A stretch of DNA of 64,000 nt from positions 1,415,937 through 1,479,936 of the forward strand of contig JBLDXI010000023.1 in NCBI GenBank assembly GCA_047495785.1, given 5' to 3'. Source of the DNA: Lepidodermella squamata (taxonomy: Eukaryota; Animalia; Gastrotricha). Positions 10,448-37,196 of this stretch are shown here, in pieces. The notes below the pieces were generated by a model, which was given only the letters and a program-made list of their open reading frames with translations, had not been told where the DNA came from and ran no database searches. Every line of letters begins with the position of its first letter. The stretch's first letter is position 1. Both the position numbers and the translations under genes were made by a program.

Positions 10448-10498
10448 GACAAAAAAAATGAAATTAACAATCGACTCCTAAAAAAATAATTTATTAAA

Positions 10499-15045: not shown

Positions 15046-18000
15046 TGCAAAAAGCAAATTTGGTACCGCTATAAGGAGAGATATAAGGAGAGATATAAGG
15101 AGAGAATAGAGCCAAATGTGTCTCTCTTACCAGCAAAATCATGCGGGCGAAAAATAATCTGAGCTAAAACATGTAAATACAACCGAGCTAAAAAAAATTT
15201 CCAGTTGGATTTCGGGAACGAAACTGCAACCCTGAAATTTGAAGCAGTATACCTTAAAAGCTATTAAGAAAATTTTGGCGAAATTGAAACGTGATAAAAT
15301 TCAGATGTTTGTCAAAGAATTAATTAAAAATCCTGATTTTCAAGAAAGAAATCAGAAGCACGTAACAACGGCGCAGGCCGAATAACGCGAAAACCTAGAA
15401 ATAAACATGGTGAAATAATAATGATATGCATTGATGAGCATGCAATCTGGGGATACACAGCCGAGGGGAGAGCAATAACGTTTCAGGTCATAATGTCTAA
15501 TAATGTAATGAAAACACCGGTCAGGTAGTTCGGCGTTAAATTAGGCATTGCAGCCAGCAACCGGAGGGCAGCAGTTCAGCTCCGCCCATCCGCCGGCTGC
15601 AAGGCAGAACAAGGTGTCCACATTTTGGCGCCAATATTTTGAATTCGAATTTGGCGCCTAGATTTTACGATAAAACGACGCGCGCATTGGGCTGGGCGCG
15701 CCGAACCACAACTTCACGCCTCCGCAGTTTTTCACGCCGCGCACGTGGCAACAACTTCACGCTGCGTGTGACTCGCGCGACCCGAGCGACGTGTACACTC
15801 TCATTAAATGTCAATTACTTGCCGTGAAGTACTGATCCAGGTTTTGCAGGTCAACACCGTCAGCCACCTGTTAAATTAACAGCGGCCGCTTTGCGGCTCG
15901 TTAAAAGACCGGCGGCTAACACGCCCTGCAATCAAGACTTTTCATCTCTCCGTTGCAAACAGGTATTGCAGGTGTTGCCCTTTTCCTATTATTGTAGTCT
16001 GTTTTTATTTCCGGCCGCAGTGATAAAGGCTGGTGAAATGATGTGATAAAAAGTGATGAAAAAAATGGGTACAGGTTGAGTGGCGCATTAGGAATACCGC
16101 GCATCAAATCAAATTTGCCAGCGCCTCAGTTTGTTGCATCATAAAGGACGAGCCGCCGCGCGCGCACAAAGGCGCCGCTTTTAGCCGCGCGTCAGTTACA
16201 AAGGCTGTGCGCTGCCAGCATTTGAAATTTTGAACTTGTCGAGCGTTCATGTTTTATTCACTATTTTCATCGTGTTTGAATCTCGTTACCATCAGCTCTA
16301 ACCAGATTAATTTACAAATTAATATCTCTGATATCATCATCATCATCATCGCCATCATCGGACGGTTGGTTATTTTATTGCCCTATTTTATTTTATTGCC
16401 TCGTATTCGGCTTGTTTAATACAGGAAAAATAACACAGCGACAAGGTTAGCCATCATTAATTCAAAACGTGTATTACAACAATTTTCATTATTCGTTTAT
16501 CACTTCATGCACCGCTAATACTTGATACACCTATTTGCACTGTTTCGTCACTTATCTATCACTTTATATCTATTGCTTTATTGCACGTTTTCGCAAGGCG
16601 GCAACAGCGCGGATTAAAGCCGCGCCGCGCTTTTGAAGTTTATTGTGCTGTTATATGCGGCGCGACCGTCTCATTATGTTAAAATTGATGGCATTTGAGA
16701 TGTTTCCTGATAGCTTTTATCGAAAAACAATTCAATTATTACTGAAAATTCAGCGTTGCTCAATCATCGTTGAATTTGATTTAATTTGAATTAATGGGGA
16801 AAATGACAAAATTACCAAAATTCAGAAAAATTTAGGAAAACACTTTTGCATACCGAATGTTCGCCCTAGATTTTGCGTTATAGTAAATTTTAGCAAATAA
16901 ATACTACCTAATAAGTCGCGGCGCGCCTACCTAATAAGTCGCGCGCGCGCGCGCTTGTAAAACTAAGTAATTTAGACGCGCGCAAAAATATAGGCCGAAT
17001 AGCGCACGTTATTATCATCACTTCCACGCAATAAATCCTGAATTTATTTATTCTCCGGCGTTTCATTTCCAAACAGCAATGTTTTATTTCTTTTTATCAC
17101 TTTCTATGACTGTTTTCTGTTTCTCTCATCAGAGGAAAATAAGATAAGTTTTGATGAAGTCATCGCTCATCTTCAATTACCAGCGCCAGGTCGACAGGCG
17201 CGTGCGGCCGCACGAACGATTAATAGAGGAACGCCGCGCTAAAACCTTCCTGTTGAAAAAACATAAATGATGAAAATGATGATAATGATGAAAAAGTGGG
17301 AAAGCGAGAGATAATGATGATATAAATTACGTCAGCGATAATAATGACCTCGAATAATTAATGCGTAAAACGAATGATAATTAGACCCACATTTTCTGCG
17401 TAAAATTTGCCGAGTTTACTCGTAAAATTGAAACTAATTTTACGCTTAAAATATTAATCTTATACGCGTAAAGCTTGAACGATTTACGCTTAAACATTTT
17501 CGCGCAATTTTACGGGTAAAATCACGCACCTACGATTTTAAGCGTAAAAGCAAGACAATTTAGGGGTAAAATATTCGAAATACGCTTACGCTTAAAATTA
17601 TGCGCATTTACGCCTAAAAAGCCTCTCAGTGTAGAGTCCTATCAGAATGGCTCGTAGGACACCTTGCTAAAATGAATGAAATTTGGTTTGGAATGGGTAA
17701 AAATTGTTGAGCTACAAATTGATTGCTTGTTTATATTGGTTTTTGATGGCTACCGAGCTCGAAATAGATGAAATCCCGGATAAAATTCAAACTAAAAGCG
17801 AGCCAAGCGAGAACATTTTTAGAATTCGACACTGAAAAACGACGTATAACATCTTAAAATTGAGGCTATGCCTTGGGGTTTTCCCAGAAATTCACTCATC
17901 ATTTGTCATAATCATGAATATCTATCATAATCATTTATTTAATCACGTCGTAAGGTGCAATCTGTAACGTCCTTAAAATAACAAGGGATATGGGTCAGTT

Positions 18001-18094
18001 TAAAAAATTGATTCTATCATTTATCGTCTCAGAGATTCAGTCAAACCACGCGGAAAGTACCGGTTCCCGTCCGATCGGAGGTTTTCATAAACTA

Positions 18095-18965
18095 CAGGGT
18101 GACTTTTTTATAGTGGCAATAATCCATGTTAGCGTCTAGTACTGAATCATCTTTGTATGGCGAGTACTTGCATGTCGATTTCTCCAAACTTAACGAACTC
18201 GTGCTAGCAATAAAATTTTATGAATGGCCTGGTATTACGCGATAATTATCAGATAGAGTTTGAAGAGTTTGGAGAAATCGACTTTAGTGCAGTGCAAGTA
18301 CTCGCAATACTAGACAGTACTAGTCCCGATTAATGCTAATGTTGGGACCCGAGTCCGAATTCTGCCCGTACGCGTTCGGGCCGGCCCGTACGCAGACGGG
18401 TAACATTGATTTGCCACTCCGCGTTCGGGCCGCTTTGAAACATGCCCGTATGCGACGTTTACTGTAAATTTAACAAATTCGATGAAATCACGCTTCACCG
18501 CACACGGGCCGGCCAAGGTGTTGGCCCAAGCACGGCGGAGAACAATGGGACCCAGCGCTATTGTTCAGCGCCGCACTCGGGCCGCCGGGCTCGGCCCTCT
18601 GGAATCAATCGCCGGGCTTGGGCCACCGGGCTCGGGTCATCCTACAACCAAAGCCCTACCCGGTAACTGTATCAAGTCCCGGCCCAAACCCGACGGCCCT
18701 AGTACGGCGCGCGCGAATGCCTAATAATAGCGCTGGATCCCATTGTTCTCCGCCGTGCTCGGGCCAACACCTTGGCCGGCCCGTGTGCGGTGAAGCGTTA
18801 TTTCATCGAATTTGTTAAATTTACAGTTAACGTCGCGGCCGGAGCGCGGAGTGGAAAATTGCTATTACCCGGTCGCACACGGGCCGTCCCGAACGCGTAC
18901 GGGCCGAAATCGGGCTCGGGCCCCAACACTAACAAAGATTATTTCCACTAAAAAAAGTCACCCTG
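18095..18965. mobile_element. Tc1/mariner-like MITE with nested palindromic elements
   Basis: TA-CAGGGTGACTTTTTT...AAAAAAAGTCACCCTG-TA; contains a ~590-bp near-perfect palindrome (18337-18931) and a smaller one (~18160-18305). Mirror at 60202-61072. Confidence 0.8.
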
Positions 18966-19342
18966 TATTTCATAAATAGGCAACTCGCGAGCGTAGCGAG
19001 CTTTAGCTGACGGTTTTTTTCCCGATTTTGAGTCTGAAAATGGTCCAAAAATGGCTTGTGGATCTACCTATTTTTGTCCTTCTGTCATTTTGAGGCCCAT
19101 AGGACACCAGTGTCCTACAGGACACTTGAAAGTTGGCTTAGTACACGAGTGTCCTATAGGACACGGTTTGGGAAACGCTGGCAGAGGGAAACATGAGTAT
19201 TATGGTAAATTTCTGGGTATTCTTTCAAATTTCATGCTTGGTTTTGGCAGAATGAGTATGCAAGGGCATGAATAGCTCCAGGCTTTGGAAAACAGTTGTT
19301 TTCAAGGCAAATATGAGTTCTCATGTTTAGTAACTGGGGGAA

Positions 19343-19875
19343 TTTTTTGCATTAACTTTTTCGCGCGAGAACACCATTATCAATCGAAAGAGAATTGTCT
19401 GAATTATTTTTTAGTATAAAAACCGACGCGATGTTTGAAAGTATTCCTTTAGCATCATCGCGCGCGGTCTTGAAGTTGATAAAAATTTAGACTCCGAGTG
19501 CGAATGCCGCGCGCTAGCTAAGCTCTGATTTTTAACCTTTCCGAGACCGCGCGCAATGGGCAGACCGCCATAACAGCGAATACCCGAAACAGCGAACACG
19601 ACAAAACAGCGAAAAATCTAATTTGCGACATAACAGCGATTTTAATATAGGACATTACACAGCATTTTGGGGAGGATTTTTCGCTGTTTCGTCGCTTTCG
19701 CTGTTATGTCGGTTTCGCTGTTCTGCGCTTTCGCTGTTTTGACGTCCTACCCGCGCAATGATGTTAAAGGATTACTTTCAAATATCGCGTCGGTTTTAAT
19801 ACCAAAAAAATAATTCAGACGATTCTCTTTCGATTAAATATGGTGTTCTCGCGTGAAAAAGTTAATGCAAAAAAG
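19343..19875. mobile_element. Foldback-type element with a nested ACAGCGAA-repeat MITE (19559-19751)
   Basis: Arms TTTTTTGCATTAACTTTTT...GAGAACACCAT inverted at 19838-19875; inner element has GG..CC termini flanked by CGCGCAATG on both sides. Mirror at 59292-59824. Confidence 0.7.
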
Positions 19876-20308
19876 TTTTACGCGCACTCCAAATTTCTGG
19901 TAATGAGTGCGCGCAAAACTCAAAATGTACGTAATACTTTTTTGTCATGAATTGTTTACGTGAGATATCTATATCTATCTAACTTTCGTAAAAATTTAGA
20001 CTTAGCGTTCGCGCTTAAGTCCACTTTTACCCTCTGATTGCGCAATCATTGTTGGCGTCGTGGACGGGGTCCGGAATTGAGCTGAGTTTTGTGGCATTAG
20101 CGCGCGCGCACCTGAAACACTACGCGCACACTGACCAATAGGCGCGCGCGCGCATTATTAGGCATTATTAGGTGCGCACGTTGGCCAATGAGCAGGCGCG
20201 CACATTATAGAGATCGGTTTCTATTTTGCCATTTTGACGCGGCCAATTTGACGCAGTCAAAAAGTCTGAGTTTTCTGCTCATCTACACTTTATTGTATCT
20301 ATTGATAC

Positions 20309-20523
20309 CAGTGTGCGATCCCCGAGCTGCCTGGGATGAAATTTTTTTTTTTGCTGTATTTGCCAAAATGACTAGTTATTTCGGCGAATAACCGATTTTT
20401 TACTAAAACACGCTCCGGAACCTTCAAAAATTAACAAAACAGTGGGATAATTTCTCGTTTTGTCGTCTGGCCCGGCCGAGCTGGGGGGATGATCCCCCCA
20501 TCCCCCCTGGAAGTCGCACACTG
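20309..20523. mobile_element. hAT-like MITE
   Basis: TIR CAGTGTGCGA; TSD ATTGATAC / ATTGATAT (7/8). Mirror at 58644-58858. Confidence 0.75.
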
Positions 20524-20670
20524 ATTGATATCAAAAACAAAAATACCGGCCCAATGGAAGGCTGAAAATATATTGCATTTAATTGCGTCCAATCAGATGT
20601 CGCGAATTCAAATTTCAGCCGTTGAGGACCTTCTTCGTTTAGAATTATAGATTAAGGTTAATCCTTCGTA

Positions 20671-22042
20671 GGATCTCAGCCTGCTCGCTGACAACCAGTA
20701 CGCGTTCCGTGCTCACCGATCCGCTCCGGACGTACCGCTGCGAGTCGCGCACCGCGTCCACCTCGGCCGGTCGCGTAACCGTAAGGTCGTCGTCGTCGGC
20801 CTTGACGTACAAGCGGCGTACGATTCCGTGTGGAGTGTCGGCCTTGCCTTCAAACTCGCCGAACTGCCTCTACCTCGAAACCTGGCCGCCTGGCTGACCG
20901 ATTTCCTGCGAGACCGGAAGCTTCAAGCGCGCGTCGCCGGCTTCCTCAGCCAGCAGCGGACTGTGAACTGCGGGGTACCGCAAGGCTCGCTCCTGTCGCC
21001 CCTACTGTACATCATGTACACTGCTGACCTTCTAACTGCGCCGACTGCCCCCGGCTGTTCCCTAGACGCCTATGCTGACGATCTCACAGTCGTCGGCGAG
21101 GGTGGAATTTCCAGGAGGCCGAACGCTGCACCCAGGCAGAGATCGATCGCAGTGGGCCCGCGAGTGGCGCCAGAAGTTTAATGCGTCGAAAAGCGAAGCA
21201 ATGCCGTTTGCCTGGCGCTCGTACCAGACCCGTCTGCACCTCGACGGCTCGACGATCCCTCAAGTTGCCGTGATTCGTGTCCTCGGCGTGCACCTTGACG
21301 CCAAGCTGACTTGGAAGTCGCACGTCGACCAGGTCATCAACCGCTGCACCCGGAACCTGTCCCACTTTCGCCGTATTGCCTGCACCCCTGGCCTCTCTCG
21401 CCGATGGCGTCGCACCGCCTACCTCAGCCTTGTCCGCTCCGCCGCCACTTACGGCAACGTCGTGTTTTGTACCGCGCCCAAGAGGCAGCTGAAGCGGCTT
21501 GATGTGTTGCAGAACGACTGTCTGCGCAGCCTGCTAAACATCCGCCGCGATGACCGGGTCCGTGTCTCGGAGCTGGAACGCCGCTGTGGCGTGAAGAGCC
21601 TTCCTGCCTTTTTCGAACAGACCCAGCGCCGTTATGCTGCGAATGCAGTCCGGTTCGTCCTCCCTCTTAGAGAAGAAGTTGAGCGACTCCGCCTCTCCGC
21701 GAACCCGGTGCCCCGTTCCCCGCTGGCCTCGATCGCCAGCAGGCTTCCTCGGGGTCCTTTGCCCACTTTCGATGTCTGATCTTGCCGCCTCTCCCTCTCC
21801 CTCTATCCTTTGCTTTCTCTTCTCTCTACCCTTCTTCTCCCTCCCATTCTCCCTCGCTGTGTTTACGTGTCTGTCTGCCTTCGATAAATCATCCATCATC
21901 CCGCCCACTTGCGTCCACAGCGCACTGCCGCCGGCAAGCGCATGTAATCTCGCGACCCCGCGTCGTTGATATCTCTCAATTATTTCGTCTCCCCTGTTTA
22001 TATGATGTCAACGAACAATAAATATTTGAATTTAGAATTTAG
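20671..22042 (+). mobile_element. 5'-truncated LINE family-1 copy (RT C-terminal half + 3'UTR)
   Basis: GVPQGS, YADD; pyrimidine-rich 3'UTR; ends AATAAATATTTGAATTTAGAATTTAG. Confidence 0.92.
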
Positions 22043-22251
22043 TAGCATGATGAGTTGGCATCGCTCAAAATTCAAAGCTTCAGACAAGCAGTATTATTGA
22101 TTATTTCCGGTAATGTTTGCAAAGAATTTGTAGTTTAATGAATGTTTCTGTTGATGTAGTACTTACGAATCGTTGCAGATCGGTCGAATTATACTCATTG
22201 AATGCCTCGAAGAATCTCACTGTAGGTTGGCATGTCTATTCTCCATGTTGA

Positions 22252-22490
22252 GCAGAATTGGCGACATAACGGCATTTCCAGCTCCGACACGCGGACCCGG
22301 TTGTCCCGACGAACGTTGAGCTTTGCTCGCAGGCAATCATTTTGGATGACAGCGAGTCGATTAATCTATTGCAGTCCGGGACAGTCCCATAAAGACAGCG
22401 CGAACGGACAAGGGTCAAGTAAAGAGTGTGGCGCCAGCCCGCCAGCGGCGCGACAGCCCAGGGGTGAACACGAGATGTTTGAAAAAACAT
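22252..22490 (-). mobile_element. Decayed LINE family-2 fragment
   Basis: Reverse complement resembles 41925-42215 (WRHTLYLTLVRS). Mirror at 56677-56915. Confidence 0.7.
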
Positions 22491-23151
22491 AACTCCGCTC
22501 TTCGCGGGATTAAACTACCGGCGCAACTACTTAAGGCATCCGGTAATGAGGGTTAGCTGCAATGTTTCAATGTTCTTAATATATCACAATGATGTTCGCA
22601 TGTGTGTGAGAGGATCGCTATGTTCCCTGTCCCAATTATTAGTTCATTAGTCCACTCTTATTATTCTAGCTAGCGCTCGTGACAGTAATATCACGTGACG
22701 CACTTCATTACAACTCATCTAATTTGGCGTCCTCTTGGCTATATAAGCCCTAAATAATGACAATAAAGTTATCAGTTGATCTGCTTTACTGATTATTCAG
22801 TCTAATTGCTGTTATTAATTTACCCCCGAACCAGGTCAGGGATATCAACCCTTCAGTGTGTGAATGCAAATTGTTGGCTCCGCTTCTCTGCACGGTCGCA
22901 GTCCCATTGCACATCACTCGCTTTAATCCAATTGATTGTTAATACTTATCGCTTATCGCTTGTAATTTCTACACTTTATTACTTGATTACTTTATTCAGA
23001 ATTTTTTGATGAAATATCCCTCCGAACGAAGCAGATCAGATGTTTACGCAAAGCTGAAAAAGCAACAGCCGGTTAGTTTCATGATGCTTTTGTGTTGCTT
23101 ATTGAAATATCTAGGCATTCTTAAAAGCAATTACTAATTTTGGTTGGCATC

Positions 23152-24483
23152 ATGTCGCCAACGCAATTTAACGCCGATCAAGTCTATTATTTGATGAAGG
23201 TAACGTAATAACAACGTTTTTTGAGCAGCTCTTTTTATTGTAAATGACTATTATTCTCCACTTGCTCAGTGCCTTGAGTTGATTCGAAAGCGCAACCTTA
23301 CAGAGGATATTGCTGAGTTAATAGCGAAAAAGATCGGCACAACGGTTGTTGAAGTGCAAAAATGGTTTTGCACAAGAAGAAAGAGAAGAGTTACAGAGAA
23401 AACTAAGAAAACTTGGCGTCTTGAAGATATTCTGGGGAAAGAAAAAAGCAAATTGTTGACGTTGGAAGTGAAACGTGATCCCAAGTTGTTCAAGGCGAGA
23501 AAGCAGCTGCTAGCTCGAAAATTTGACCTTACCGAGCGTCAAGTTGAAAGATTCTTCATCGGTCATCGCGTTCAACGAAAGACATATGTTCGTTTCAAGC
23601 TAACTTCTCAGCAAAATGAAATATTCGAGAAGGTATAACTGAGAAGCAATATTTGCTTAAGATTATGACTGACTGTTATAGGAGTTCAAACAGAATCCTG
23701 CCGCGTCGCTGCAAAGATTTAGAGAAGTGGCCAAAGCCGTGGGCGTAACATGTTATCAGGCTAGGCGTCTTGTTGGAGAACGAAGAGCTCAATTGGGAAT
23801 CCGCGGTAGAACAGGGACATTGGAATTTGTTGGATTCACGGATTTTCAACTGGCTGAACTACAGGAAGCATTCCAAGCAACAGTGGTTAGGGGCGACAGG
23901 TTTGACGATGCTCTCTATCGAAGTTTGGCCGAGAAAACAGGATTGAAAACGACCGTAGTGCGGAATTGGCTCTATAACCAGCGTAAATCAGCTGGCCTCG
24001 GAAAGAAAAGAGAAACTCTTGATCATACTAGTGTCTGCTCTCTAAATGCTGTGAGTTGCACCCTTGATCTTAAAGTTACAATTATCCAACATGATTGTTT
24101 CTCAGGAGTTCGCTAAATCGAGCCGTATGGAAGGAGACAGTATGCAAGCTATTGCGAAAAAGTTGGGATTAACTTTCAGACAGGTTAGATGCTTTTTCGC
24201 TACGAAGCGGAAACGATTGAGTGCTGCGATAAAAAATAATCAATCCCTTCGTACACTGAAACGTAACCAGCGAAATGCCTTGACGAAGGTGTGATGAAGC
24301 TTACAATTCCAGTCTATACAGTTCTCAGTTTTTTTTGTTCAGGAATTCAATGAGAATCCAAATCTACAGGAAACTGGAATAACTCGTCTTGCTGAAAGAC
24401 TGGAAATTCCATTTGATATTGTGAGACGTTTCCTCGACATCCACCGTCGTGTTAAAGCCAGATGTCCTTGTAAAATCGAGTGA
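23152..24483 (+). CDS. Copy E: multi-homeodomain gene truncated after the sixth homeodomain
   Basis: Exons 1-4 open with GT-AG introns; exon 5 reads EFNENPNL...RRFLDIHRRVKARCPCKIE then TGA at 24481-24483; exon 6 missing, exon 7 decayed. Confidence 0.65.
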
Positions 24484-24893
24484 CCTGGCAGCAGCGGATT
24501 CTTTCTAGAAAAGGTAAATGACTTGACAAGTTTGAAGGTTTCCTGTTTCCTGTTTAAAGGAATTGCTTTGTTTCATTCGAAATGCTTTTTTGAAAAAAAG
24601 AAATAGAAGAAAGCAGCAATCGGTTCATGAACATCATTCTGTCTCCTGGTAAACTGTTTAAACTGTTCCGAGTTAACAGAAAATTGAAAAGAATGCAGAT
24701 ACCTCCTCGGTTGATTTTCATTGAAAAAATCAGGATCAGTGTAAAAAAAATGACTCAGTTGTCTCTGATTTGTCATCCCCTTGTGCAAATGCGAATACGA
24801 ATGATTAACAGGAAGTTACGGTTATCTGTAGGTGAATTTATTATCTGTTATCTGTACTAGTACATTTTGAATGATCAATTTATGTTCGACAAA

Positions 24894-25362
24894 ATGTTGC
24901 CCACCCAGCTTAAAGCCAGTCAGCGCTCTTACTTGTCAAAGGTAATGCCAGGAAAAATTATTTGTAATTATCTGTTATTCACTATTTCAACTCTTACGCA
25001 GTTGAGAAAACTTTCAATGTCACGCGACATGCGTAGCCTGCTCGAAAGGAAACGGATTCTTGAACGTGGGCTCGGAAATCGAGTTGATAGGATCAACGCT
25101 TTGCACGCCCAGTTCCGCGCTGCGAAAGCGGCTCAGAAGTTAAGGCGGGATGTTTCCAACCTGCGACATGTTGAAGCTCTGTCGTTCCAGCACCGCTACC
25201 GTGAGGCTTATGCCCGTCTCCGTCGTCTCGATAAGTTTCGCCCTACCCCTGTTGATCGCCTGACCTACATGAAGCTCGATGATGGAAGTGTCCTGCTGCC
25301 GTCTACTGCCCTTGCTGATGCACTGCTTTATCATTTCGTCAAACCGATGTCGCCATACGTAG
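24894..25362 (+). pseudogene. Copy F: exon 1 remnant followed by a divergent LINE ORF2 linker fragment (~25000-25362)
   Basis: MLPTQLKASQRSYLSK|GT then MSRDMRSLLERKRILERGLGN...HRYREA...FVKPMSPY, homologous to but distinct from family-1 ORF2. Mirror at 53805-54273. Confidence 0.75.
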
Positions 25363-25583
25363 GAATCAAAGGTAGAACAATTGGTAGAACAATTGAGGAA
25401 CTGGTGGCATTTATTGTTGGGTAAGGTAATAAGGAAAAATTGTGTTGTCTCTGATTTGTGGCCCTTACGAATGACCTTAAAAATGCGAATTCCATATGAA
25501 CGATTAACAAAACGTTTTGGTTTTGTTATATGTAGGTGAATTTTTCATCTGTACACTTTGAGTAATCAATTCTGTTGGACAAC

Positions 25584-28229
25584 ATGTTTCCAACCCAACT
25601 TAAAGCCGGTCAGCGGTCTTACTTGGTGAAGGTAACGGCAAGAACAATGTTCATATTGTTCAGACTCGGTTCACAGACTCGGCGACACGGCGACACTGTC
25701 GCGCACTTGTCGCGCTGTAACGGCCGAGCGACTCACATAGACAGTCACGGTTGAGGGTTGAGACTTGAGACACGCTGTCGTGCGACAAATCCATTTTGCG
25801 AAATAATACGAAATGGTAATGGAAGCAGCCAGTGTGCGAAGTAGGATCCGGGAGCTGAGATGTTTTCTAGGAACCAGCCTAAGAAACCAAAGGGTCCCCC
25901 CTTTTGTTTTTTTTAGCCTTTCTCTGGCTGGAGTCCCGTAGCTGGGGTGTTGCGACACCCCAGCACCCCTGTACTTCGCACCCTCGAAGCAGCCCTATTT
26001 TATTGCTCCTCGTCGTAGTACTTAATTTTTTCATTATAATATAAACATGCTTTTTCATTCTGCCACGGAACTTTGCCCACGCTAACAAACCAATCAGCTA
26101 ATGTAAGTCGCCTAAGTCAACAGCAACATCTCGAGGTAACCGAGCTAAATTTAAAACAGTATTAAGTCCCAATAATCCTGTGTTCTTTGTGTGCGGTTGT
26201 TTATCGGCTCTTTGAGTGAGGATTAGGATTGAAACAAATATTAGTAATTAACCGGACACTCTGATCCTTGTCGCCTTGTCGCGTCGCGAGGTCGAAAATC
26301 CCCTATTTTCAAGCTAGTTGCTGCGTCAAGCGACAACATCCATTGTTTTCGACGTCGCCAGCTGTTACGCAACGCTATTGTTAGAGCGCGCGACAGATCG
26401 CCCAAGCTGGGAACACCCTCGCGATAATAGCGCGCGACATTCTAGTTGTCGCGTCGCCACCCTGTCGTGTCGCCGAGTCTGTGAACCCACATTTACTGTT
26501 ATTTTTTACTAATCTCAACTCACTAATCTTAGTGCTTTGATTTGTTGGGAAATCGCAAGCTTCCCAAGGATACGGCTGGGTTCATAGCGAAAAAGATTGG
26601 CACATCGGTTGTGAAAGTTCAAAACTGGTTCCGCATTAGACGGAGGAAAGGAGTTGAAATGAATACTAAGAAGATTTGGCGATTTGAAGATATTCTTGGG
26701 GAAGAAAAAAACGAATTGTTAATGCTCGAAGTGAAAAATGATCCTAAACTGAGCAAGGGCAGACAGCAGATGCTGTCACGACGATTCGGCTTGACGGAAA
26801 GCCAGGTTGAACGATTCTTCTGCAAGCATCGCAACCAACGAAATGCTCGGTTGGAGTTAACATCCCAGCAAATTGAAACATTTGAGAAGGTTAAACTGAG
26901 AAGTGCTAAATCTCTAATCTGGTGATTGATTTTTACAGGAATTCAAACAGAATCCTGGCGCTTCAGAAAAAAGGTGCCGCGAAGTCGCTGAAGCTATGGG
27001 CATAACAGTTAATCAGCCCACACGTCTTGTCTTGAAACGGCGAGCTGAAGTGGGAATCCGCAGTAGAACAGCGAAATCTGAGTCCTGTCAATTCACAGAT
27101 TCTCAACTGGCTGAACTACAGGATGCATTCCAGTCAACAGTTGTGAATGGCGATAGCTTTGACTATGCTCTCTTTCAAAGATTGGCCAAGAAAACCGGAT
27201 TGAGAAGGTACGTGGTCAGGAATTGGTTTGTTACCCGGCGCAAATCTGTTGGGCTCGGAAAGAAACGACTAAATCTCGATCAAGCCAGTGTCTGCGTTTT
27301 GAATGCCGTGAGTTCACCCTTTTGAAATGGAAAGTTGACATGTTTCAGAAGTATCAATGAAATCGCTAAGGTTGTAGTAGTGGTTTTCCATTTTATCGAC
27401 TCGGATAAATCAATAATATGACAACATTTTGGCGAACTCGAGTCATTTAGTCATTTATTCCGACAAAGTGTGGAATTGTGGGATGTTTGGAAACATATTA
27501 TTGTTTCAGAAGTATTGTTCTTCAGGAGTTCGCTGAATCCAGCCGACTGGAGGGCGGCAGAGCGCTAGCGATTGCGGAAAAGTTGGGATTGACTTTTGGA
27601 CATGTTAAGAAATTTTTCGCTATGAAGCGGAAACTACTGATAACTGCGACAAATAAGCCGTCCCGTCGTCCCACACTGAAACGTGACCAGCGAAATGCCC
27701 TGACTGAGGTGAGATGAGGCCGTTTTTAAATCTATGACGTCTATCTATCTATTATCTATCATTCATTCGATTATTTTTTGTTCAGGAATTCAATGAGAAT
27801 CCAGATCTACAGGGAACTGGAATAACTCGTTTGGCTGACAGACTTGAAATCCCATTAGAATCTGTGAAACGTTTCTTCAACTGTGCTAAAGCTCGAGGTT
27901 CCGCTATAACTCGGAAAAGAAGCGCCCCGACTTGGGAGCAGCGGCTTCATCTAGAAAAGGTGATTGATCCGATAGGCTTGCGAATTAAGCGTTTTTTGCT
28001 TCATTACTGTGGTTCAATTTATTTAGGAGTTTAAAACCTGCAAATTCGTAACACACCAGCAAGCTGAGCGCCTAGCAACTTCAATTGGATATCCCAAGGC
28101 AATAAAGCTTACCCTTCCTTTCTGAGTTCCTTTTTATTTGTCTTCCTTTTTACATAGATAAAAGAGTGGTTCAGGTCGAAGCGGAAGCATGAAAAACAGA
28201 AACAGAAGGAAGAAGCATTTGGTTCTTGA
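25584..28229 (+). CDS. Copy G: intact seven-homeodomain protein gene, 7 exons, 424 aa
   Basis: Exons 25584-25631, 26533-26889, 26939-27307, 27526-27708, 27786-27959, 28027-28098, 28158-28229; all phase 0, no internal stop; helix-3 motifs VQNWFRIRR, VERFFCKHR, PTRLVLKRR, VRNWFVTRR, VKKFFAMKR, VKRFFNCAK, IKEWFRSKR. Confidence 0.85.
25668..26488. mobile_element. MITE in intron 1 of copy G
   Basis: TIR GGTTCACAGACTCGGCGACACG / CGTGTCGCCGAGTCTGTGAACC with GCGAC-rich subterminal repeats; TSD not clear. Mirror at 52679-53499. Confidence 0.75.
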
Positions 28230-28559
28230 GCATCCTGTTTCCTTTTGTTGTATAATTTGAAATCTAACAACGCAGGGCCCTAACTATTTTCTATGATTTT
28301 GGGTTTTTCAACCCGCATTGATATGACTTCAGTTTTGAACAGCACAGCATTTTCGTTCATTTTCGGTAGAGCAAATGCCTGTGAATCGTGATTTAAATAG
28401 TAGTGAACATACCTTTTTTATTTTTATGATTTGAAGCCGAGGATTCCCTACATATTCCCTCCGATTCAAAGATTCACAGTTTCAGACTGGTAGTTTGATT
28501 GTTTGTTACAGGTAATCTTTGAGATGAATTATAAATATGATGACCGATTCTATTAATTC

Positions 28560-29180
28560 AGACTTTCAATTTCTGTCAATCGATTGACTTACTCAGGAAA
28601 AGGCACATGAAATCTCAACGGAGATTGGTTCCAAGAAAGGAGAAGATCAGAGAAAATTAGATTCGCCTCATGAAAGATGTAAATGTGTTTTGATTAGGCA
28701 ATTTTTATCTTTCAAATCACTACGTTAGCAGGTGAAGAAGCATTACGTGCTATCAAAAAATGAGATATTGCCGCTTGTTTCAGAAACTGTACCAAGTTCA
28801 CATCAAGTTGGATCGGTTTATCATCGCGCTTCAACGAAAAAGAAGCATTGTTAGGTATCAGTTATCAAGCTCCGCGGAACAGGGTTGTGTTACTGCTTTT
28901 TTTATCCGAACTCTTGCAATGGTCGGCGATCGGTTTGATAGGTACTTGTGTGAAATCCCTTTTTGAAGATATTCAAACTGAACCCTTATGCAGCTTACAG
29001 TTACGGTGAACTCGCTAAGACTTTGAAATTAACTTATGGACACTCATCGCTCTAAAGCACGCCGAGCTGGGAATTCGCTCGAGGAAAACTAAGACGAAGA
29101 AGTTATTCAGATTAACACAAGCTGCAAGAGCTTCGAGAAGCCCTTCAATCATTGGCATTGAGGAGTGAGCGGTTGAACTA
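28560..29180 (+). pseudogene. Copy H: strongly decayed multi-homeodomain paralog
   Basis: Residual TGGTTCCAAGAAAGG, GAGCTGGGAATTCGCTCGAGG (ELGIRSR) and GAGCTTCGAGAAGCC segments collinear with exons 2-3; many lesions. Confidence 0.45.
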
Positions 29181-29918
29181 ACGACGCTTTGCTAATAAAA
29201 GGCACATTTTAATCTCACTTCGAAATGTTCATTGTTCATAGCTAGCTTTAACCCATATTGACCTATTCGGTCATCCTGTTTCCTCCTTCTGTCTTTTGTC
29301 TTTCTTCCTCATGTACCGGTTCCCCTTGCACGCCCCCTCTCCCCTTCTGCTGACGATAACTAATCATCCATCCTCCATGTTCTACCTAGAGCCTTTTGGT
29401 GACCTAGCGGTGACCTTTTCGCTCTCTGTGTTCTTAATTTTGCTTTAATTCCTAACGTCACTTGAATGAAAGAAATAAACCTCGAATTTAGATTAAAGAT
29501 GTTAAATACATACTCAAGTATTGCTTGTAATTTGTATTTGTTGCCCTTCAGCTTTCTGAATTCTAATGAATCTTTGCGTGGGGAGATATCCTTTCGGACG
29601 AAGCAGATCAGATGTTCATGCAAAGCTGGCAAAGCATCGGGGTTGATGCAGGGTGTATGGTTGAACTGTGACGAAGGGTAGAAACTCCGATGAAGCTCTT
29701 TGCAGAAACGTAGCTGATAATTTTAAATGGAAATGGACAGCTGTTAAACGCCGGTTCTCCCAGCTCGTTTGTCAGTTGATCAGTTGTTTTACCGAACAAG
29801 TAATGTTCGGGAATATTTGAAAATTTGCATTTTCCCTGATTTGAGTGCCCTCAATTTGAATTTTATGATTCTATAGTCATTGTGAATTTGAACTATTTAC
29901 TCATTTTGTTTCGACATA

Positions 29919-30176
29919 ATGTCGCCAACCCCACTCAATGGAGATCAGATCTCTTCCTTGATGAAGGTAACGCCAAGACTACGCTTTTAACAAGTTCTTT
30001 ATATTGTAATTACTATTTGTAAACTTCTGCTCAGTGCTTCGAATCAATACGGAATCGCGAGCGGCGAAAGATTTGAAGTCGCCTTCTTTCAAAGTTTGGC
30101 CAAGAAAACCGGTTTGAAAATGACTGTGGTAAGGAAATGGTTCTCTAACCAGCGCAAACGGCTGGCCTCGGAAAGA
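29919..30176 (+). pseudogene. Copy I: internally deleted paralog, cut by the full-length LINE
   Basis: MSPTPLNGDQISSLMK|GT; start of exon 2 fused to exon 3 (LAKKTGLKMTVVRKWFSNQRK). Mirror at 48991-49248. Confidence 0.75.
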
Positions 30177-30259
30177 TACGAATTTTCTGAGGTTTTTACA
30201 CGTATTTGTGTTTCTGCTTGCGCTACTGCAGCGGTACACTTACTTAACTACTTCTTACG

Positions 30260-31862
30260 ATGGCCGGCAATAAAGGCGGGAAGAAGAAGAAGAAGGCAGC
30301 TCCTACACTTTCCCTGTTTAAGGCTCTGAGGGGCCTGGACGCTGCTGACATCGCCAATGTGCTGAAGATGATCGCGGCGCTCAAGGCCGCAAAGGGTTGC
30401 CCGGAGACTCTCTCGGTTAGTGGCGAGGTCCACATGGACTCGGCTGACGAGAGTGGCGACGAGCCACCTACGCTCACCTATGCTGGCGCGGCCACGTCCA
30501 CGGCCTCGTCTCAGCGCCCGTCGTCGCACCCGGCGACCCCTGACTCTCGTGTTAAGCCGCCGCCTCAAGGCGCTCCTCCTGCGGGCTGCGGGTGCTGCCC
30601 CTGCTCCGTCCACTGCTGCCAACACCGGTTCTTTTCGCACTGTCATAATCGATGGAATACACGGCATTCGACGGCACGAACTTGAGCCCAAACTCTACGA
30701 GGCTGTCGCCTGGCTTCGGCCCGAAACCGTTGTTGTCATGGCTAGTGGTGGCTTGCGTATCATCTGTAAAACCCCCGCTGATGCTCAGCGCCTTCTCGAC
30801 CGCGATGGGTTCGCTCCTGAGGCCTTTCGCGGCTCCGCATTTCGCGTCCACCGCCCCGGCCAGCCAGACCCTAAGGCTGCTAAGTCCAAGCAAGCTGACA
30901 AGGACAGTCGTTCGGTGATCACTGCCCGGCTGCCTGGGTTCTATACCACCGACCAGCTTCTGAAGCACCTGACGAACGTCGTCGAAATTCGTGACATGCC
31001 AGTTCACACCCCCGGCGATGACCCGCTCCGCGTCGTCGTCCTCAAGACACAAGCGTTACGCGACGAGGCTCTCACCCTCGGCCTCGAGTTCCTGAATCGC
31101 CGTATCAAGTGCCGCCCTCTCAAGGACGGCCTCCTTCCGCCTAAGTGTATGCGCTGCGCCCGGTTTGGGCACGTCGAAGTTGACTGTGCTGCGGCAGAGA
31201 AAGACCTCCTGTGTGGTCGCTGCGCCTCGCCGAACCACAAAACCGCCCAGTGCGAAGCGCCGCGCGAATCCCTCGCCTGCGTCAACTGTCCGGACGGTGG
31301 CTCGCCTCGCCACTCCAGTCTCTGGCGCGGCTGTCCTCAGTTCAAGGCCGCTAAAGTGCAGGAGGCCGAGTCCCGTGCTGCCCGCGCCGAGGCGAGGCGT
31401 GCTGGTGTCGCTCGACAAAAGAAGGTCACGCCACCGACCGCGCCGCCTCAGCCCCCTCCGGGCCGCGTCTTCCGGGTTGCCACTCGCGATCTTGTCGGCT
31501 CCGCGCCGCCGCCCCCACCGCAACTCCCGCCTGTTAACCCTGCTATCCGTAACCAGTTCCAGACGCTCGACGGCGCTCGTTTGTTCGAAATGATGGACGC
31601 CCGCCTGAAGAAGTTCGAGGAAAAGGAGGTTGCCTACGGCCAGCGTCTTCTACGGCTGGAGAACGCCTTCGTTGAGATCACGGGCCTTGTCAAGGCGGTC
31701 GTGCATGCGCCTCCCGTTCGCGCGGCTGGTGGCCCGCCGCCCCCTGCCTCAGCTCCTCCGCCGTCTCCCGTCTCGGCCCCGCGCGGGTCGTCTCGTGGCT
31801 TGCTGTTTCATATGTCCCCGGCTGCCGCGTTGCCCCCGACCGAGCCTGGATCAACATGGTAG
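30260..31862 (+). pseudogene. LINE ORF1, gag-like with three Cys/His knuckles; frameshift near 30583
   Basis: MAGNKGGKKKKK start continues in the +1 frame as AAGAAPAP...; CMRCARFGHVEVDC, CGRCASPNHKTAQC, CVNC...H...C. Confidence 0.85.
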
Positions 31863-34719
31863 ACTGTGACTTTCTGACGCAATGGAACTGCCGTGGTGGT
31901 AATGACAAAACGTTTGAATTTTATTGTGTTATTGATGATTTTAATCCGGTTGCTTTTCTGATTAACGAGTCTTTCTTCTATTCTCTTACCTCTGTCTCCC
32001 TCGACGGGTACGCGATCTTTCGTTGTGATAGGGCACAGGACTCTGCAGAAGCCTTGCTTGGTGACGCGCATGGCGGGTCGGCGATCCTGGTTCGCGAAGG
32101 GGCGGTTGTCGTCTCCGAGCGGAAGCTGGCCTTGACTGGGGCGAAGAGAAGCGAGTGGATACGCCTCGACCTGCTGCCTGGTCGCCGTTGTGAAGCAGTA
32201 CGTGTGTTTACCGGCTACTGTCCGCCGTCGTCCCGTCTCGACCTGCGCTGGTTTGAGGAGGAGTTCGCTGAAGCTGCTCGTCTGGCTGTCCCGTGTTTCT
32301 TTGGCGGCGACCTGAACGCGAAATCACCACTGTGGGGGAAGGGCGACCTCTGAAACGCCAACGGCTTCTCCCTCCACCACGCCGCGACTCGGCTCGGTCT
32401 TACCGTCCTTCCGTCTCCGAAGCCGACTCATCTGCATCCCTCCTCCGGTTCGCTATCCACGCGCGATGTATGGGTGCTTAACGACGCTGCCATGCGCCTT
32501 CTGCGCGGCGGCGCTCACGTTGGCGATCGATATACCAGTGACCATTTCGTGACCTCAGTCGCTGTCGCCTTCCCAGTTGGCCGGCGGCTGCCTGCAGTCG
32601 ACCCTCCCGCTCCGGATCCGTTTCCGCGGTACGACGTCTCGCGCGCCGATCGTCTGGGTTTTTCCCGCACCTTGACTGCTAAGCTCCTTGCCATTCAGAT
32701 GCCAGCTCCCGGGGACCCCTTCCCACGACTTGCCGCTTATCGCCGAGAAGTCACCAGCGCTATCGCCGAGTCCCGCGACCTTCACGTGCCCGTCTGTGCG
32801 CCGGGGCAGCTGCGACGCATCGCCATGAGCCTGGAGATGCGCAGGCTTCTTCAGGAGAAGCGGGTTCTGGAACGTGCTCTGGGCAACCACGTCGACCGCG
32901 AGCTATGCGCCCGGCTCAAAGATCTCGACGCCCGGTTCCGCGCTGCGCAGCACGCTCATCTTCTCCGTCGCGACATCGCCAATCTTCGAATGGTGGAAGC
33001 GCTATCTGCCCAGCACCGTTACCGAGAAGCGTGAGAGCGCCTCCGCCGTCTCGACCGACACAGGCCGCCGCGTTCGGCTGGGCCCATGATACTGGATGAC
33101 GGCCGCGTCTTAGCGCCATCGCCTGAGCTCGCAGATGCTCTCCTGAGTCAGTTCGTCAAGCCGATGACGCCGTATGAAGACCCGGCTGCCGATGCTGCGA
33201 CCAGACAACGTTGGGCCGATATAGAGCGATTCGTTTCCACCGATCCTGATCTTCAGCGTACCGATACCCTGCAGCTACCCGGCCCGGGTGAGTTCTCCGT
33301 CAGCCAGCGCATGGTGGCTGATGCAGTCGGGCGCCTCAAGCCGTTTAAGGCGCCTGGGCTGGACGGCATCAGTCCTCTATTCTACAAATGGGGCGGGCCG
33401 CCGCTTCAGCGCCACCTTCGCCATCTGTTTAACCTCAGCCTCGGCTCCCGATGCGTTCTGCCGGAATGGAAGGAGGCTGCCGTCATCCCTGTGCCTAAAG
33501 CCGGTAAACCGCATGGCGCCGTCTCGTCTCAGCGGCCGATCTCGCTGCTCCCAGTTGACGGCAAGCTACTCGAATCGATCATCGCGCGCTGGTTGGGTGG
33601 GTTCCTGGAGGATCTCAGCCTGTTGCCTGACAACCAGTACGCGTTCCGTGCTCACCGATCCGCTCCGGACGTACCGCTGCGAATCGCGCACCGCGTCCAC
33701 CTCGGCCGGTCGCGTAATCGCAAGGTCATCGTCGTCGGCCTTGACGTACAGGCGGCGTACGATTCCGTGTGGAGTGCCGGCCTTGCCTTCAAACTCGCTG
33801 AACTGCCTCTACCTCGAAACCTGGCCGCCTGGCTTACCGATTTCCTGCGCGACCGGAAGCTTCAAGCGCGCGTCGCCGGCTTCCTCAGCCAGCAGCGGAC
33901 TGTGAACTGCGGGGTACCGCAAGGCTCGCTCCTGTCGCCCCTACTGTACATCTTGTACACTGCTGACCTTCTAACTGCGCCGACTGCCCCCGGCTGTTCC
34001 CTAGACGCCTATGCTGACGATCTCACAGTCGTCGGCGAGGGTGCGAATTTCCAGGAGGCCGAACGCTGCACCCAGGCAGAGATCGATCGCAGTGGGCCCG
34101 CGAGTGGCGCCAGAAGTTTAATGCGTCGAAAAGCGAGGCAATGCCGTTTGCCTGGCGCTCGTACCAGACCCGTCTGCACCTCGACGGCTCGACGATCCCT
34201 CAAGTTGCCGTGATTCGTGTCCTCGGCGTGCACCTTGACGCCAAGCTGACTTGGAAGTCGCACGTCGACCAGGTCATCAACCGCTGCACCCGGAACCTGT
34301 CCCACTTTCGCCGTATTGCCTGCACCCCTGGCCTCTCTCGCCGATGGCGTCGCACCGCCTACCTCAGCCTTGTCCGCTCCGCCGCCACTTACGGCAACGT
34401 CGTGTTTTGTACCGCGCCCAAGAGGCAGCTGAAGCGGCTTGATGTGTTGCAGAACGACTGTCTGCGCAGCCTGCTAAACATCCGCCGCGATGACCGGGTC
34501 CGTGTCTCGGAGCTGGAACGCCGCTGTGGCGTGAAGAGCCTGCCTGCCTTTTTCGAACAGACCCAGCGCCGTTATGCTGCGAATGCAGTCCGGTTCGTCC
34601 TCCCTCTTAGAGAAGAAGTTGAGCGACTCCGCCTCTCCGCGAACCCGGTGCCCCGTTCCCCGCTGGCCTCGATCGCCAGCAGGCTTCCTCGGGGTCCTTT
34701 GCCCACTTTCGATGTCTGA
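31856..34719 (+). pseudogene. LINE ORF2: AP endonuclease + reverse transcriptase, disrupted
   Basis: QWNCRG, INES, GGSAIL, GDLNA, SDH (APE); KAPGLDG, RPISLL, GVPQGS, YADD, LGV (RT). In-frame TGA at 32351 and 33032, frameshift near 34090. Confidence 0.92.
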
Positions 34720-35944
34720 TCTTGCCGCCTCTCCCTCTCCCTCTATCATTTGCTTTCTCTTCTCTCTTCCCTTCTTCTTCCTCCCATTCTCCCTCGCTGT
34801 GTTTACGTGCCTGTCTGCTTTCGATAAATCATCCATCACCCCGCCCACTTGTGTCCACAGCGCACTGCCGCCGGCAAGCGCATATAATCTCGCGACCCCG
34901 CGTCATTGATATCTTTACTTATTTTGTCTCCCATATCAATGAACAATAAATATTTGAATTTAGAAAAAAAAAATTGAGCACTATCACACCTTAGTCAAGG
35001 CATTTCGTTGATCATGCTTCAGTGTGCGAAGACGGGATTGCTTATTATTAACAGTTCTCAATTGTTTCCGCTTCATATAGAAAAAAGTTGTGACCTTTCC
35101 GAAAGTTAATCCCAACTTGTCCGCAATTGATCGCGCTCTGCCGTCTTCCAGTCGGCTCGAAACAGCGAATTCCTGAGACACAACATTTTAAATACATTTT
35201 AAACTATGATCAGAAGTTGAACTCACGGCATTCAGAAAGCTGATACTACTTTGAGTGAGACTTTCGTAATTCCTTACGAGGCCAGCAGATTTGCGCCGGG
35301 CTGAGAACCACTTCATGACCGCGGTTCTTTTCAACCCGGTTTTCTCGGCCAAACTTTGATAAAGGGTGACGTCAAAGCTTCCGCCCCTGGAAACTGTGGA
35401 CTGGAATGCTTCCTGCAGTTCGGCAAGTTGAGAATTCGCGATTCCAATTGTTCCAGCTCTACCGCGGATTCCCAATTGAGCTCGCCGTTCTAAAACAAGA
35501 CGCCTGGCTTGATAAAACGTTATGCCCACGGCTTTGGCCACTTCGCTCAATCTTTGCAGCGAAATGGTAGGATTCTGCTTGAATTCCTATAACGATCACT
35601 CCTAATATTAAGCAAATATCACATCTTGGTTATACCTGCTCGAATGTTTCATTCTGCTGAGATGTCAGTATGAAGCGAGCCTTTCGGTTAGTGCTATATT
35701 TGCTGAAGAATCTTTCAACCTGACCCTCGTTAAGTCCAAATTCTCGTGCCAGCAGCTCCTTTCTCGCCTTGGGCAACTTGTTATCATGTTTTACTTCCAA
35801 TTTCAACAGTTCGTACTTCTCTATCCCAATAATATCTTGAAATCGCCGACTATTCTTGGTCATCTTCACAACACTTTTTCTCTTCCTTGTGTGAAACCAG
35901 TTTTTTAAGTTTAAAAACAGATGGGCCAATCTCGATATGACGCA

Positions 35945-37072: not shown

Positions 37073-37196
37073 GACGCAGCGATATCCTTTTTGTTGGTTG
37101 CGCTAAGATTGCGCCAACGCAACAAATCGAAGCACTGAGCAAGAGTTTGAAAAGTTGCTGTTAACAATATAAAGAAGCCTAAAAAAAGCTTTATCT

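Follow-up and report, generated by a model that had tools for sequence, protein, structure and literature searches.

The 64,000-nucleotide stretch of DNA analyzed here (the window) probably holds a family of multi-homeobox genes that is confined to one lineage and whose copies come and go over time, in which copy D (25584-28229, forward strand) would be a complete gene for a protein of seven homeodomains (HDs) and copy G a six-unit derivative. A single homeodomain is what almost every homeobox gene encodes, and multi-HD proteins made only of homeodomains are rare and of unknown function.

Seven exons of copy D, whose splicing is predicted from the genomic sequence, join into a single 424-amino acid reading frame, and this reconstructed gene model gives the same protein as a preliminary description of this DNA had claimed. 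The product would be about 49 kDa, with a pI of 10.4 and a net charge of +43. All six introns are in phase 0; five are of the GT-AG type and the last is GC-AG (AAG/GCAA), with the GC donor kept in all six copies that carry this intron. On the forward strand, exon 1 (25584-25631) encodes Met and helix 1 of HD1 (HD positions ~3-18) and ends at the donor AAG/GTAACG; both the exon and this donor have been preserved in seven copies, which include B, C, C2, E, and G. Exon 2 (26533-26889) encodes helices 2-3 of HD1, the entire HD2, and helix 1 of HD3, and exon 3 (26939-27307) encodes helices 2-3 of HD3, the entire HD4, which has a TALE-like loop extension of 3-4 residues, and helix 1 of HD5. Exon 4 (27526-27708) supplies helices 2-3 of HD5 and helix 1 of HD6, with domain 5 aligning across the junction at residues 258/259, and exon 5 (27786-27959) supplies helices 2-3 of HD6 and helix 1 of HD7. 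The last unit is completed by exon 6 (28027-28098; HD7 positions 19-44, ending at the GC donor AAG/GCAATA) and exon 7 (28158-28229; helix 3 of HD7, then a basic tail and the TGA stop). Exon 6 of D differs from that of the other copies by an in-frame 6-nt deletion, which removes two residues from the turn between helices 2 and 3 of HD7. Five of the seven units share an intron at HD position 18/19, in phase 0.

Homeodomain content was assessed with an independent profile made from 28 canonical homeodomains of unrelated proteins. This profile found exactly seven HDs in the spliced D protein (123.5 bits, versus 8.8 for the best of 1000 shuffles), which span residues 7-415 of 424 in alignments that cross the splice junctions. 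In an exon-by-exon Pfam scan, D exons 2 and 3 scored 36.3 and 34.0 bits with PF00046, above the gathering cutoff of 22.9; exons 4 and 5, each of which holds two thirds of a unit, scored 16.0 and 19.2 bits, below it. Exon 3 of six other copies also exceeded the cutoff (26.8-32.1 bits). The scan detected no other Pfam family, zinc fingers included, on any D exon, and the HOCHOB double homeodomain (PF17943; an HD-cysteine loop-HD module) gave no match to the D exons at E ≤ 1. Seven homeodomain units and no other domain, as proposed earlier, were thus recovered, and the PF00046 check that had been suggested was passed on D exons 2 and 3.

AlphaFold models of exons 2 and 3, each modeled singly, had pLDDT values of 80-86 for HD2 and 86-92 for HD4. 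In Foldseek comparisons, units 2 and 4 superposed on solved homeodomains with an rmsd of 1.0-1.3 Å over about 50 residues, and the exon 3 model, which contains unit 4, matched the homeodomains of DUX4, engrailed, and ALX4. The models thus show a predicted three-helix homeodomain fold for units 2 and 4, and the recommended structure prediction, carried out exon by exon, bore out the homeodomain fold for these two. For units 1, 3, 5, 6, and 7, the assignment is based on helices inside single exons and on the profile register across junctions. When PDB sequences were searched with phmmer, exon 3 had no match at E ≤ 0.01 and exon 2 had one weak match, to an engrailed design.

Asn51 is needed for the canonical base contact of homeodomains, and specificity is classically assigned to positions 50 and 54. 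With the Antennapedia homeodomain sequence as the numbering ruler, position 51 of D units 1-7 reads I, K, R, T, M, C, and S, so that Asn51 is found in none of the seven; six of seven units retain W or F followed by F at positions 48/49, and R/K53 is likewise retained in six. The only Asn51 residues of the family lie in unit 4, in copies B, C, E, and G. Unit 4 has the TALE loop extension together with a W-x-S-N-R-R helix 3, and the other six units lack the extension. In copy G, unit 4 gives an ungapped alignment with MATalpha2 (E = 0.005). With PF05920 (Homeobox_KN), copy E scored 26.7 bits, above the cutoff of 24; copies A, C, D, F, G, and H scored 16.5-22.4 bits, below it, and copy B had no match at E ≤ 0.01. 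By these features unit 4 is TALE-like and a candidate member of the TALE class, the sole such unit among the seven. The earlier statement that the family could not be assigned to a named class therefore holds insofar as no named orthologue was found, but it needs amending for unit 4.

The window contains 10 clear loci (R0, A, B, C, D, E, F, G1, G, and H) and two tiny relics, an isolated exon 1 (C2; 24894-24941, forward), which has its donor and no downstream exons, and a 28-codon relic at 15281, which makes about 12 where the preliminary description had counted about 13 copies or remnants. Only D is complete. Copy G (39246-40735, reverse) has an open frame and is short of one unit: helices 2-3 of HD1 are deleted, six HDs are encoded, and HD4 has Asn51. 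In the rest, transposons, stop codons, or deletions have cut or broken the gene, and nine or ten of the about twelve loci are visibly broken. On the forward strand, R0 (2-400) is cut by the window start, comprises exons 5-7 only, is open so far, and is nearest to copy G. Copy A (2683-4752), the closest paralog of D (76% amino acid identity), has exons 2-7 open, but a ~430-bp MITE (2716-3144), flanked by an intact 8-bp target duplication (GTCAGCGT), splits exon 1, so that copy A was inactivated recently. Copy B (5533-6723) is a pseudogene of exons 1-4, with an in-frame stop in exon 4 and nothing after that exon, and copy C (23152-24438) is a truncated pseudogene of exons 1-4 and half of exon 5, with a degenerate 3' end. 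Copy E (29919-30212) consists of exon 1 and one TALE-type HD remnant (WFSNQRK) in a broken frame; a LINE starts directly downstream, at about 30.25 kb. Besides G, the reverse strand carries copy F (34990-35941; part of exon 2 and exons 3-4, truncated at both ends), G1 (38734-39192; a partial duplicate, exons 5-7 only), and copy H (42878-43619; a remnant that comprises just exons 3, 6, and 7, the last of which has a 7-nt insertion).

The cluster lies amid transposons, and the closest relatives of the LINE in the window are on metagenome contigs. Intron 1 of D itself holds an 820-bp transposon-like insert (25668-26487) with perfect 22-nt terminal inverted repeats, the inner part of which (25782-25969) has a depth of 15,000-19,000, versus about 89 in flanking unique contigs, and is thus of very high copy number. 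The assembly also contains an inverted repeat with no mismatches across 17.5 kb (15167 to 32634), whose mirror arm (45124-64000, reverse) carries the reverse complements of E (48955-49248), D (50938-53583), C2, and C (54729-56015). The mirror copies reported earlier for C, C2, D, and E are therefore present in the assembly, but as one perfect inverted duplication rather than as independent copies. This repeat may be an assembly foldback. In the only public run that contains this DNA, a genomic one, depth was about 89 for contigs identical to D and 110-119 for those of variant paralogs, a comparison with paralogs rather than with a single-copy baseline, which weakly suggests that D is not at double dose.

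The paralogs are 52-84% identical in amino acid sequence, with dN/dS values of 0.3-0.6, which together with the about 12 local loci agrees with the earlier characterization of the family as fast-evolving and locally amplified. The paralog dN/dS comparison that had been recommended gave, over three independent pairs, 0.53 overall (Fisher p = 2e-10) and 0.22 at fold-core positions; several of the copies compared are pseudogenes, and a value of 0.5 is constraint of moderate strength only. The entire cluster, D included, might then be the decaying relic of a once-functional multi-HD gene and inactive today, a reading that we regard as unlikely. It would fit the nine or ten broken loci, the setting amid transposons, recognition positions that evolve neutrally (see below), and three features of D that, along with the moderate dN/dS, speak against its being functional, namely the lack of Asn51 in all seven units, the two-residue deletion in the HD7 turn, and the non-canonical GC donor. 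However, D keeps 424 open codons, and under neutral evolution after D and A diverged, a stop-free frame would have a probability of 0.014, counting substitutions alone. The exons of D and A are 85.5% identical and every indel in them is a multiple of three, whereas the introns are 83.6% identical and rich in indels, with gaps in 41% of aligned columns. Moreover, copy A was intact until its young MITE insertion. The open frame of D, the in-frame exon indels, the core dN/dS, and the young MITE in A together argue for selection until recently at least.

Variation is greatest where specificity would be expected to reside. In all seven units, no other position from 28 to 58 varies as much among paralogs as 50 and 54 do (pairwise identity 0.17 and 0.29, versus 0.80 for the core), whereas the backbone-contact positions 52/53 are conserved among paralogs, and dN at 50 and 54 combined is 0.39, versus 0.18 elsewhere (p = 0.002). 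These features, with a fast turnover of copies in a region rich in transposons, would be expected of an array like those of KRAB zinc-finger proteins, in which each unit reads a few bases and recognition residues diversify under positive selection to track transposons or satellites. We nevertheless find such an array quite improbable: dN at positions 50 and 54 does not exceed pooled dS (0.36; p = 0.79) and is thus at about the neutral rate, so that relaxed constraint explains the variability equally well, Asn51 is absent from all D units, and there is no repressor domain. For the seven-HD proteins to be the homeodomain counterpart of KRAB zinc-finger arrays, with positions 50, 54, and 47 reshuffled among paralogs and DNA recognition independent of Asn51, is very doubtful. 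Near-neutral base-contact positions and a D protein without Asn51 are a serious hurdle for the poly-zinc-finger-like action that the preliminary description had suggested; they fit lost specificity as well as they fit diversifying specificity, and since the base-contact positions evolve neutrally, sequence-specific DNA reading by D remains putative. Judged by the substitution pattern, the fold core and Arg/Lys 52/53 are under purifying selection, and the paralog comparison supports real, selected genes.

For the lineage-restricted gene family that we favor, the ancestral gene would have encoded a small, very basic protein of just seven tightly packed, divergent homeodomains. The intron placement shared by five of the seven units suggests that the array grew by duplication of exon-sized units, which may have happened long before the present paralogs split. 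The gene would then have been copied locally, in tandem and inverted orientation, after which LINE and MITE insertions, deletions, and stop codons would have ruined most copies. We infer a nuclear D protein whose helix 3 and basic linkers provide multivalent nucleic-acid binding; because Asn51 is absent from every D unit, low or unconventional sequence specificity would be expected. Canonical reading would be left to the TALE-like unit 4 alone, in those copies where it still has Asn51. Our guess at the most likely role, drawn from the analogy of other young homeobox arrays, is a fast-evolving regulator in the germline or early embryo. The anatomy of the family is informative: exons mostly correspond to single units, an intron position is shared, one unit is TALE-like, Asn51 has been lost, and variability peaks at the classic specificity positions. 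If expressed, the family would be a convenient system for nucleic-acid binding by tandem homeodomains that lack Asn51 and also for zinc-finger-style evolution of specificity in homeodomain arrays; if not, it is merely a decaying gene cluster.

No orthologue of D was found among 1.84 billion representative proteins when the exons were searched separately; the best match, a 10-HD protein of Caenorhabditis nigoni (E = 2.5e-10), reflects generic HD similarity. The 276-amino acid read-through ORF of copy B (5683-6513), used as a query for homologues, had no match. A transposase origin of the family was considered and rejected, given the lack of a transposase domain, the introns and conserved 5' exon, and spacing that fits tandem duplication. 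The searches also found unnamed proteins with 8-10 HDs in other eukaryotes, one tandem array among them. In that array (L001, with proteins P0013, P0162, and P0164; ENA ERZ26273096), head-to-tail genes encode proteins of about 510 amino acids that contain only HDs and align collinearly with D over 380 residues, but identity to D is 22%, the genes are intronless, and there are eight units. Its origin from the same genome as the window was rejected, as there is no nucleotide match and the GC content differs (37% in L001).

Orphan, tightly packed multi-HD proteins are already on record, including C. elegans CEH-100 (12 HDs), CEH-99 (4), and CEH-83 (5) (Hench et al. 2015, PMC4448998; Bürglin and Affolter 2016, PMC4901127) and amphioxus Muxa/b (PMC4448998, PMC6118893); with these and the 8-10-HD proteins, the family is not the undescribed system for which it had been named the best candidate. 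Like D, the three CEH proteins have little beyond tightly packed divergent HDs, some shorter than 60 amino acids, are of unknown function, lack orthologues even in close relatives, and arose by local duplication in duplication-rich regions. No specific sequence relationship to them emerged from the search of representative proteins, and the D family differs in its seven units, the 18/19 phase-0 intron shared by five, the TALE-like central unit, and its about 12 loci. ZHX1-3/HOMEZ and ZFHX proteins have four to five HDs each, several without canonical DNA-contact residues and with a role in protein-protein contacts (PMC7144352), but they also have C2H2 zinc fingers, of which D has none, long linkers, and vertebrate-wide conservation. 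DUX4/Dux genes are likewise young and tandemly amplified, and double-HD crystal structures of their products rank first among the structural matches to the models of both D exons; however, they encode two PRD-class HDs with Asn51 and an activation domain, lie in macrosatellite repeats, and are confined to mammals. The non-canonical spiralian SPILE/TALE-IV genes encode TALE-type HDs, which unit 4 resembles, and likewise form fast-evolving, lineage-restricted expansions, some with two homeoboxes, but two HDs are the most reported (PMC6118893), whereas the D family has seven units, one of them TALE-like. The seven-HD design is thus rare but of an already known kind, to which the D family adds a clear case.

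Joining seven exons on the forward strand in copy D of this family (25584-28229) gave a 424-codon open frame, which reproduces the 424-amino acid length given in the preliminary description. The exons lie at 25584-25631, 26533-26889, 26939-27307, 27526-27708, 27786-27959, 28027-28098 and 28158-28229. All six introns are phase 0 and five have GT-AG borders; the last begins with a GC donor (AAG|GCAATA). All six copies with this last intron have AAG|GCAA at the corresponding site, and we therefore took it to be a genuine GC-AG intron rather than a lesion. Four lines of evidence, detailed below, support the exon splicing that we infer for copy D: the comparison with copy A, the open frame, the dN/dS values and the conserved 5' end. 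With 90 Lys and Arg residues versus 47 Asp and Glu, the predicted protein is strongly basic (pI 10.4). The surrounding DNA is eukaryotic in character, with a GC content of ca. 40%, short introns and numerous transposons. Intron 1 (901 nt) itself holds a transposon-like element of 820 bp (25668-26487) bounded by perfect 22-nt terminal inverted repeats. In one genomic read set, the k-mer depth of its inner ca. 190 nt (25782-25969) was 15,000-19,000, versus ca. 89 for the unique flanks; thus, the element is a very abundant genomic repeat.

Several comparisons identify the units of this protein as homeodomains (HDs). Exons 2 and 3, the only ones with whole units, scored 36.3 and 34.0 bits against the Pfam homeodomain profile PF00046, above its gathering score, and exons 4 and 5, each carrying two thirds of one unit, scored 16.0 and 19.2 bits. 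We also assembled an independent profile of 28 canonical homeodomains that have Asn51; their source was unrelated multi-HD proteins from other organisms, matched by the exon 3 search described below. In spliced D it recognised seven domains, neither more nor fewer, at 14.8-27.2 bits each (123.5 bits in total), with alignments crossing the exon junctions at residues 16/17, 135/136, 258/259, 319/320 and 377/378; the best of 1000 shuffled controls reached 8.8 bits. The seven domains cover residues 7-415 and no other domain was found in copy D, just as the preliminary description had it. That description had named PF00046 and structure prediction of the spliced protein as checks. The profile check succeeded on exons 2 and 3; the structural one was carried out on these two exons singly, from paralog alignments. 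In the AlphaFold models, units 4 (pLDDT 86-92) and 2 (pLDDT 80-86) form confident three-helix bundles, and partial helices of the adjacent units lie on either side, as expected. The top Foldseek matches of both were homeodomains only (the DUX4 double HD, engrailed, ALX4 and others), with an rmsd of 1.0-1.3 Å over ca. 50 residues and target-normalised TM-scores up to 0.92; the E-values of 0.008-0.03 were weak, as is to be expected with so short a fold (50 residues).

Positions within the units are numbered on an Antennapedia homeodomain, used as a ruler only. At position 51, units 1-7 of D have Ile, Lys, Arg, Thr, Met, Cys and Ser, so that none keeps Asn51; Trp or Phe at 48, Phe at 49 and Arg or Lys at 53 are kept in six of the seven. 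In unit 4, Asn51 is retained by copies B, C, E and G within a W-x-S/Y-N-R/Q-R motif and replaced by Thr in A, D and H and by Ala in F. This unit has a loop extension of 3-4 residues, and that of copy G aligns ungapped with the TALE homeodomain of yeast MATalpha2 (E = 0.005). Unit 4 therefore looks TALE-like, with the cutoff of the TALE-class profile PF05920 (24 bits) reached in copy E only (26.7 bits); A, C, D, F, G and H scored below it (16.5-22.4 bits), and in copy B PF05920 had no match. Comparison of positions 28-58 among the paralogs, in each of the seven units, showed the greatest variability at position 50 (mean pairwise identity 0.17), followed by position 54 (0.29); the core mean was 0.80. 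In three independent pairs of copies, dN at these two positions was 0.39, twice that of the rest (p = 0.002) and not above the pooled dS of 0.36 (p = 0.79). Thus, the classic specificity positions can vary freely, with fold and backbone contacts retained. Diversifying specificity and a loss of base-specific reading would fit this freedom equally well, and the proposed analogy to zinc-finger arrays is weakened by the missing Asn51.

A search of the window by tblastn, exon-by-exon alignment and family profile gave 10 clear loci and two tiny relics, slightly fewer than the ca. 13 copies first reported. On the forward strand, R0 (2-400), cut by the window edge, has exons 5-7 only. Copy A (2683-4752) is open in exons 2-7 and is inactivated by a recent insertion into exon 1 of a ca. 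430-bp MITE (2716-3144) that has 19-nt terminal inverted repeats and an 8-bp target duplication, GTCAGCGT, and is hAT-like. Copy B (5533-6723) is truncated and has a stop in exon 4, copy C (23152-24438) is truncated within exon 5, and a relic of 28 codons lies at 15281. C2 (24894-24941) is an orphan exon 1; it continues into a 185-amino acid ORF (24867-25424) with no family match, probably a piece of a transposon that has taken the place of the remainder of C2. Copy D is complete, and E (29919-30212) has exon 1 and one HD in a broken frame, with a LINE starting directly downstream. On the reverse strand, F (34990-35941) retains part of exon 2 and exons 3-4, and G1 (38734-39192) exons 5-7. G (39246-40735) is open with six HDs, helices 2-3 of unit 1 having been deleted; H (42878-43619) has exons 3, 6 and 7, the last with a 7-nt insertion. 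Contigs from the genomic run include variants matching no copy in the window, and further paralogs or a divergent haplotype must therefore lie outside it.

The pairs A/H, B/G and C/F lie in opposite orientation at 76-85% nucleotide identity; thus, an older inverted segmental duplication underlies the cluster. Another inverted repeat has arms at 15167-34043 and 45124-64000, the outer one reaching the window end, separated by a unique 9.2-kb spacer and extending inward to 34965 and 44203. Its first 17,468 nt (15167-32634) contain no mismatch, 32635-34043 contain 23, all within a LINE, and the extension adds six and one 1-nt indel, so that all 29 mismatches and the indel are confined to the inner LINE copies. 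This repeat represents a very young palindrome or else a foldback of the assembly through two LINE copies in inverted orientation, and whichever applies, the mirrored C, C2, D and E do not count as independent copies. The mirror copies of the preliminary description are thus present in the assembly, as one duplicated or misassembled block, the second arm. A non-LTR retrotransposon with reverse transcriptase occupies 30250-34965, with fragments at 20670-21975, 36690-37080 and 41300-42400; its GC content is ca. 60% versus the 40% background. The closest protein relatives share 53-68% identity and all come from short metagenome contigs; the full-length ones among them also have an endonuclease domain. 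Several long ORFs at 8972-14361 (-) gave no Pfam match. One of them, of 313 amino acids (13420-14361, -), has a C2H2-like motif at its start; in the ESM Atlas it resembles transposase clusters of the Plavaka/KDZ type (score 0.93), a lead only.

We consider it quite probable that this family gains and loses copies and that D is a functional gene within it. Its product would be a basic nuclear protein that binds nucleic acid multivalently. That the cluster as a whole is now dead is the main rival reading and seems unlikely to us. Had D been evolving neutrally after it separated from A, a distance of 0.081 substitutions per site, its 424 codons would have stayed free of stops with a probability of 0.014. 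Identity between D and A is 85.5% in exons versus 83.6% in introns; the exons differ by only three indels, each of 6 nt, whereas gaps make up 41% of aligned intron columns. Exon 1 and its donor are conserved in seven copies. Pairwise Nei-Gojobori dN/dS among all copies was 0.17-0.62, which, with the number of loci, bears out the fast evolution and local amplification first proposed. Pooling the independent pairs D-A, B-G and C-F gave dN 0.187, dS 0.357 and omega 0.53 (Fisher p = 2e-10), with omega 0.22 at the fold-core and backbone-contact positions (34, 38, 40, 45, 48, 49, 52 and 53). For most of its history the family has evolved under moderate purifying selection. Most of its present copies are nonetheless pseudogenes. 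A block of ca. 55 nt upstream of the ATG is common to D (25520-25583), A (2625-2682) and C2 (24835-24893); it includes TAG|GTGAATTT, ca. 50 nt ahead of the start codon, which could be a trans-splice acceptor.

A phase-0 intron at positions 18/19, ahead of a conserved Glu-Phe, interrupts each of units 1, 3, 5, 6 and 7; unit 7 has a second intron at 44/45, and units 2 and 4 have none. Local alignments between units gave z-scores up to 8 and grouped HD1-HD4-HD7 and HD2-HD5-HD6, HD3 being the most degenerate. The units are old duplicates of one another, which makes the seven-unit design older than the paralog expansion, and the common intron position suggests that the array grew by exon-sized duplication.

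An exon 3 profile of seven paralogs, searched against 1.84 billion representative proteins, had 26 matches at E <= 0.001 (best 2.5e-10); no orthologue of the family, named or otherwise, was among them, in agreement with the preliminary description, which could not assign it to a named class. All eight matches scanned with Pfam are themselves multi-HD proteins (4-10 HDs), and the matches include a 10-HD protein of Caenorhabditis nigoni, a 6-HD Peromyscus prediction and proteins from ENA and Logan assemblies. One of these matches, the unnamed protein P0013, aligns collinearly with D at 22% identity. It is encoded in a head-to-tail array of four genes, one fragmented, at 10001-18479 of a 32-kb contig from another eukaryote (L001; ENA ERZ26273096, ctg154794), adjoining ordinary housekeeping genes. 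Unlike D, the array genes are intronless and encode ca. 510 amino acids with eight HDs each; GC differs and nucleotide similarity is absent. P0013's own family is confined to unnamed assemblies, plus a distant Heterodera match. The multi-HD design recurs in several lineages. Known multi-homeobox genes in a 2018 survey are Hdx, dve/Compass, Zfhx, Zhx/Homez, amphioxus Muxa/Muxb and Dux, and spiralian TALE genes with two homeoboxes have been reported (PMC6118893). The preliminary description's undescribed system does not hold, the rare HD-only design being already on record in CEH-99 (four HDs) and CEH-83 (five), which have no orthologues in sister species (PMC4448998; PMC4901127). The family adds one more example of this rare, already known design and does not represent a new type of system.
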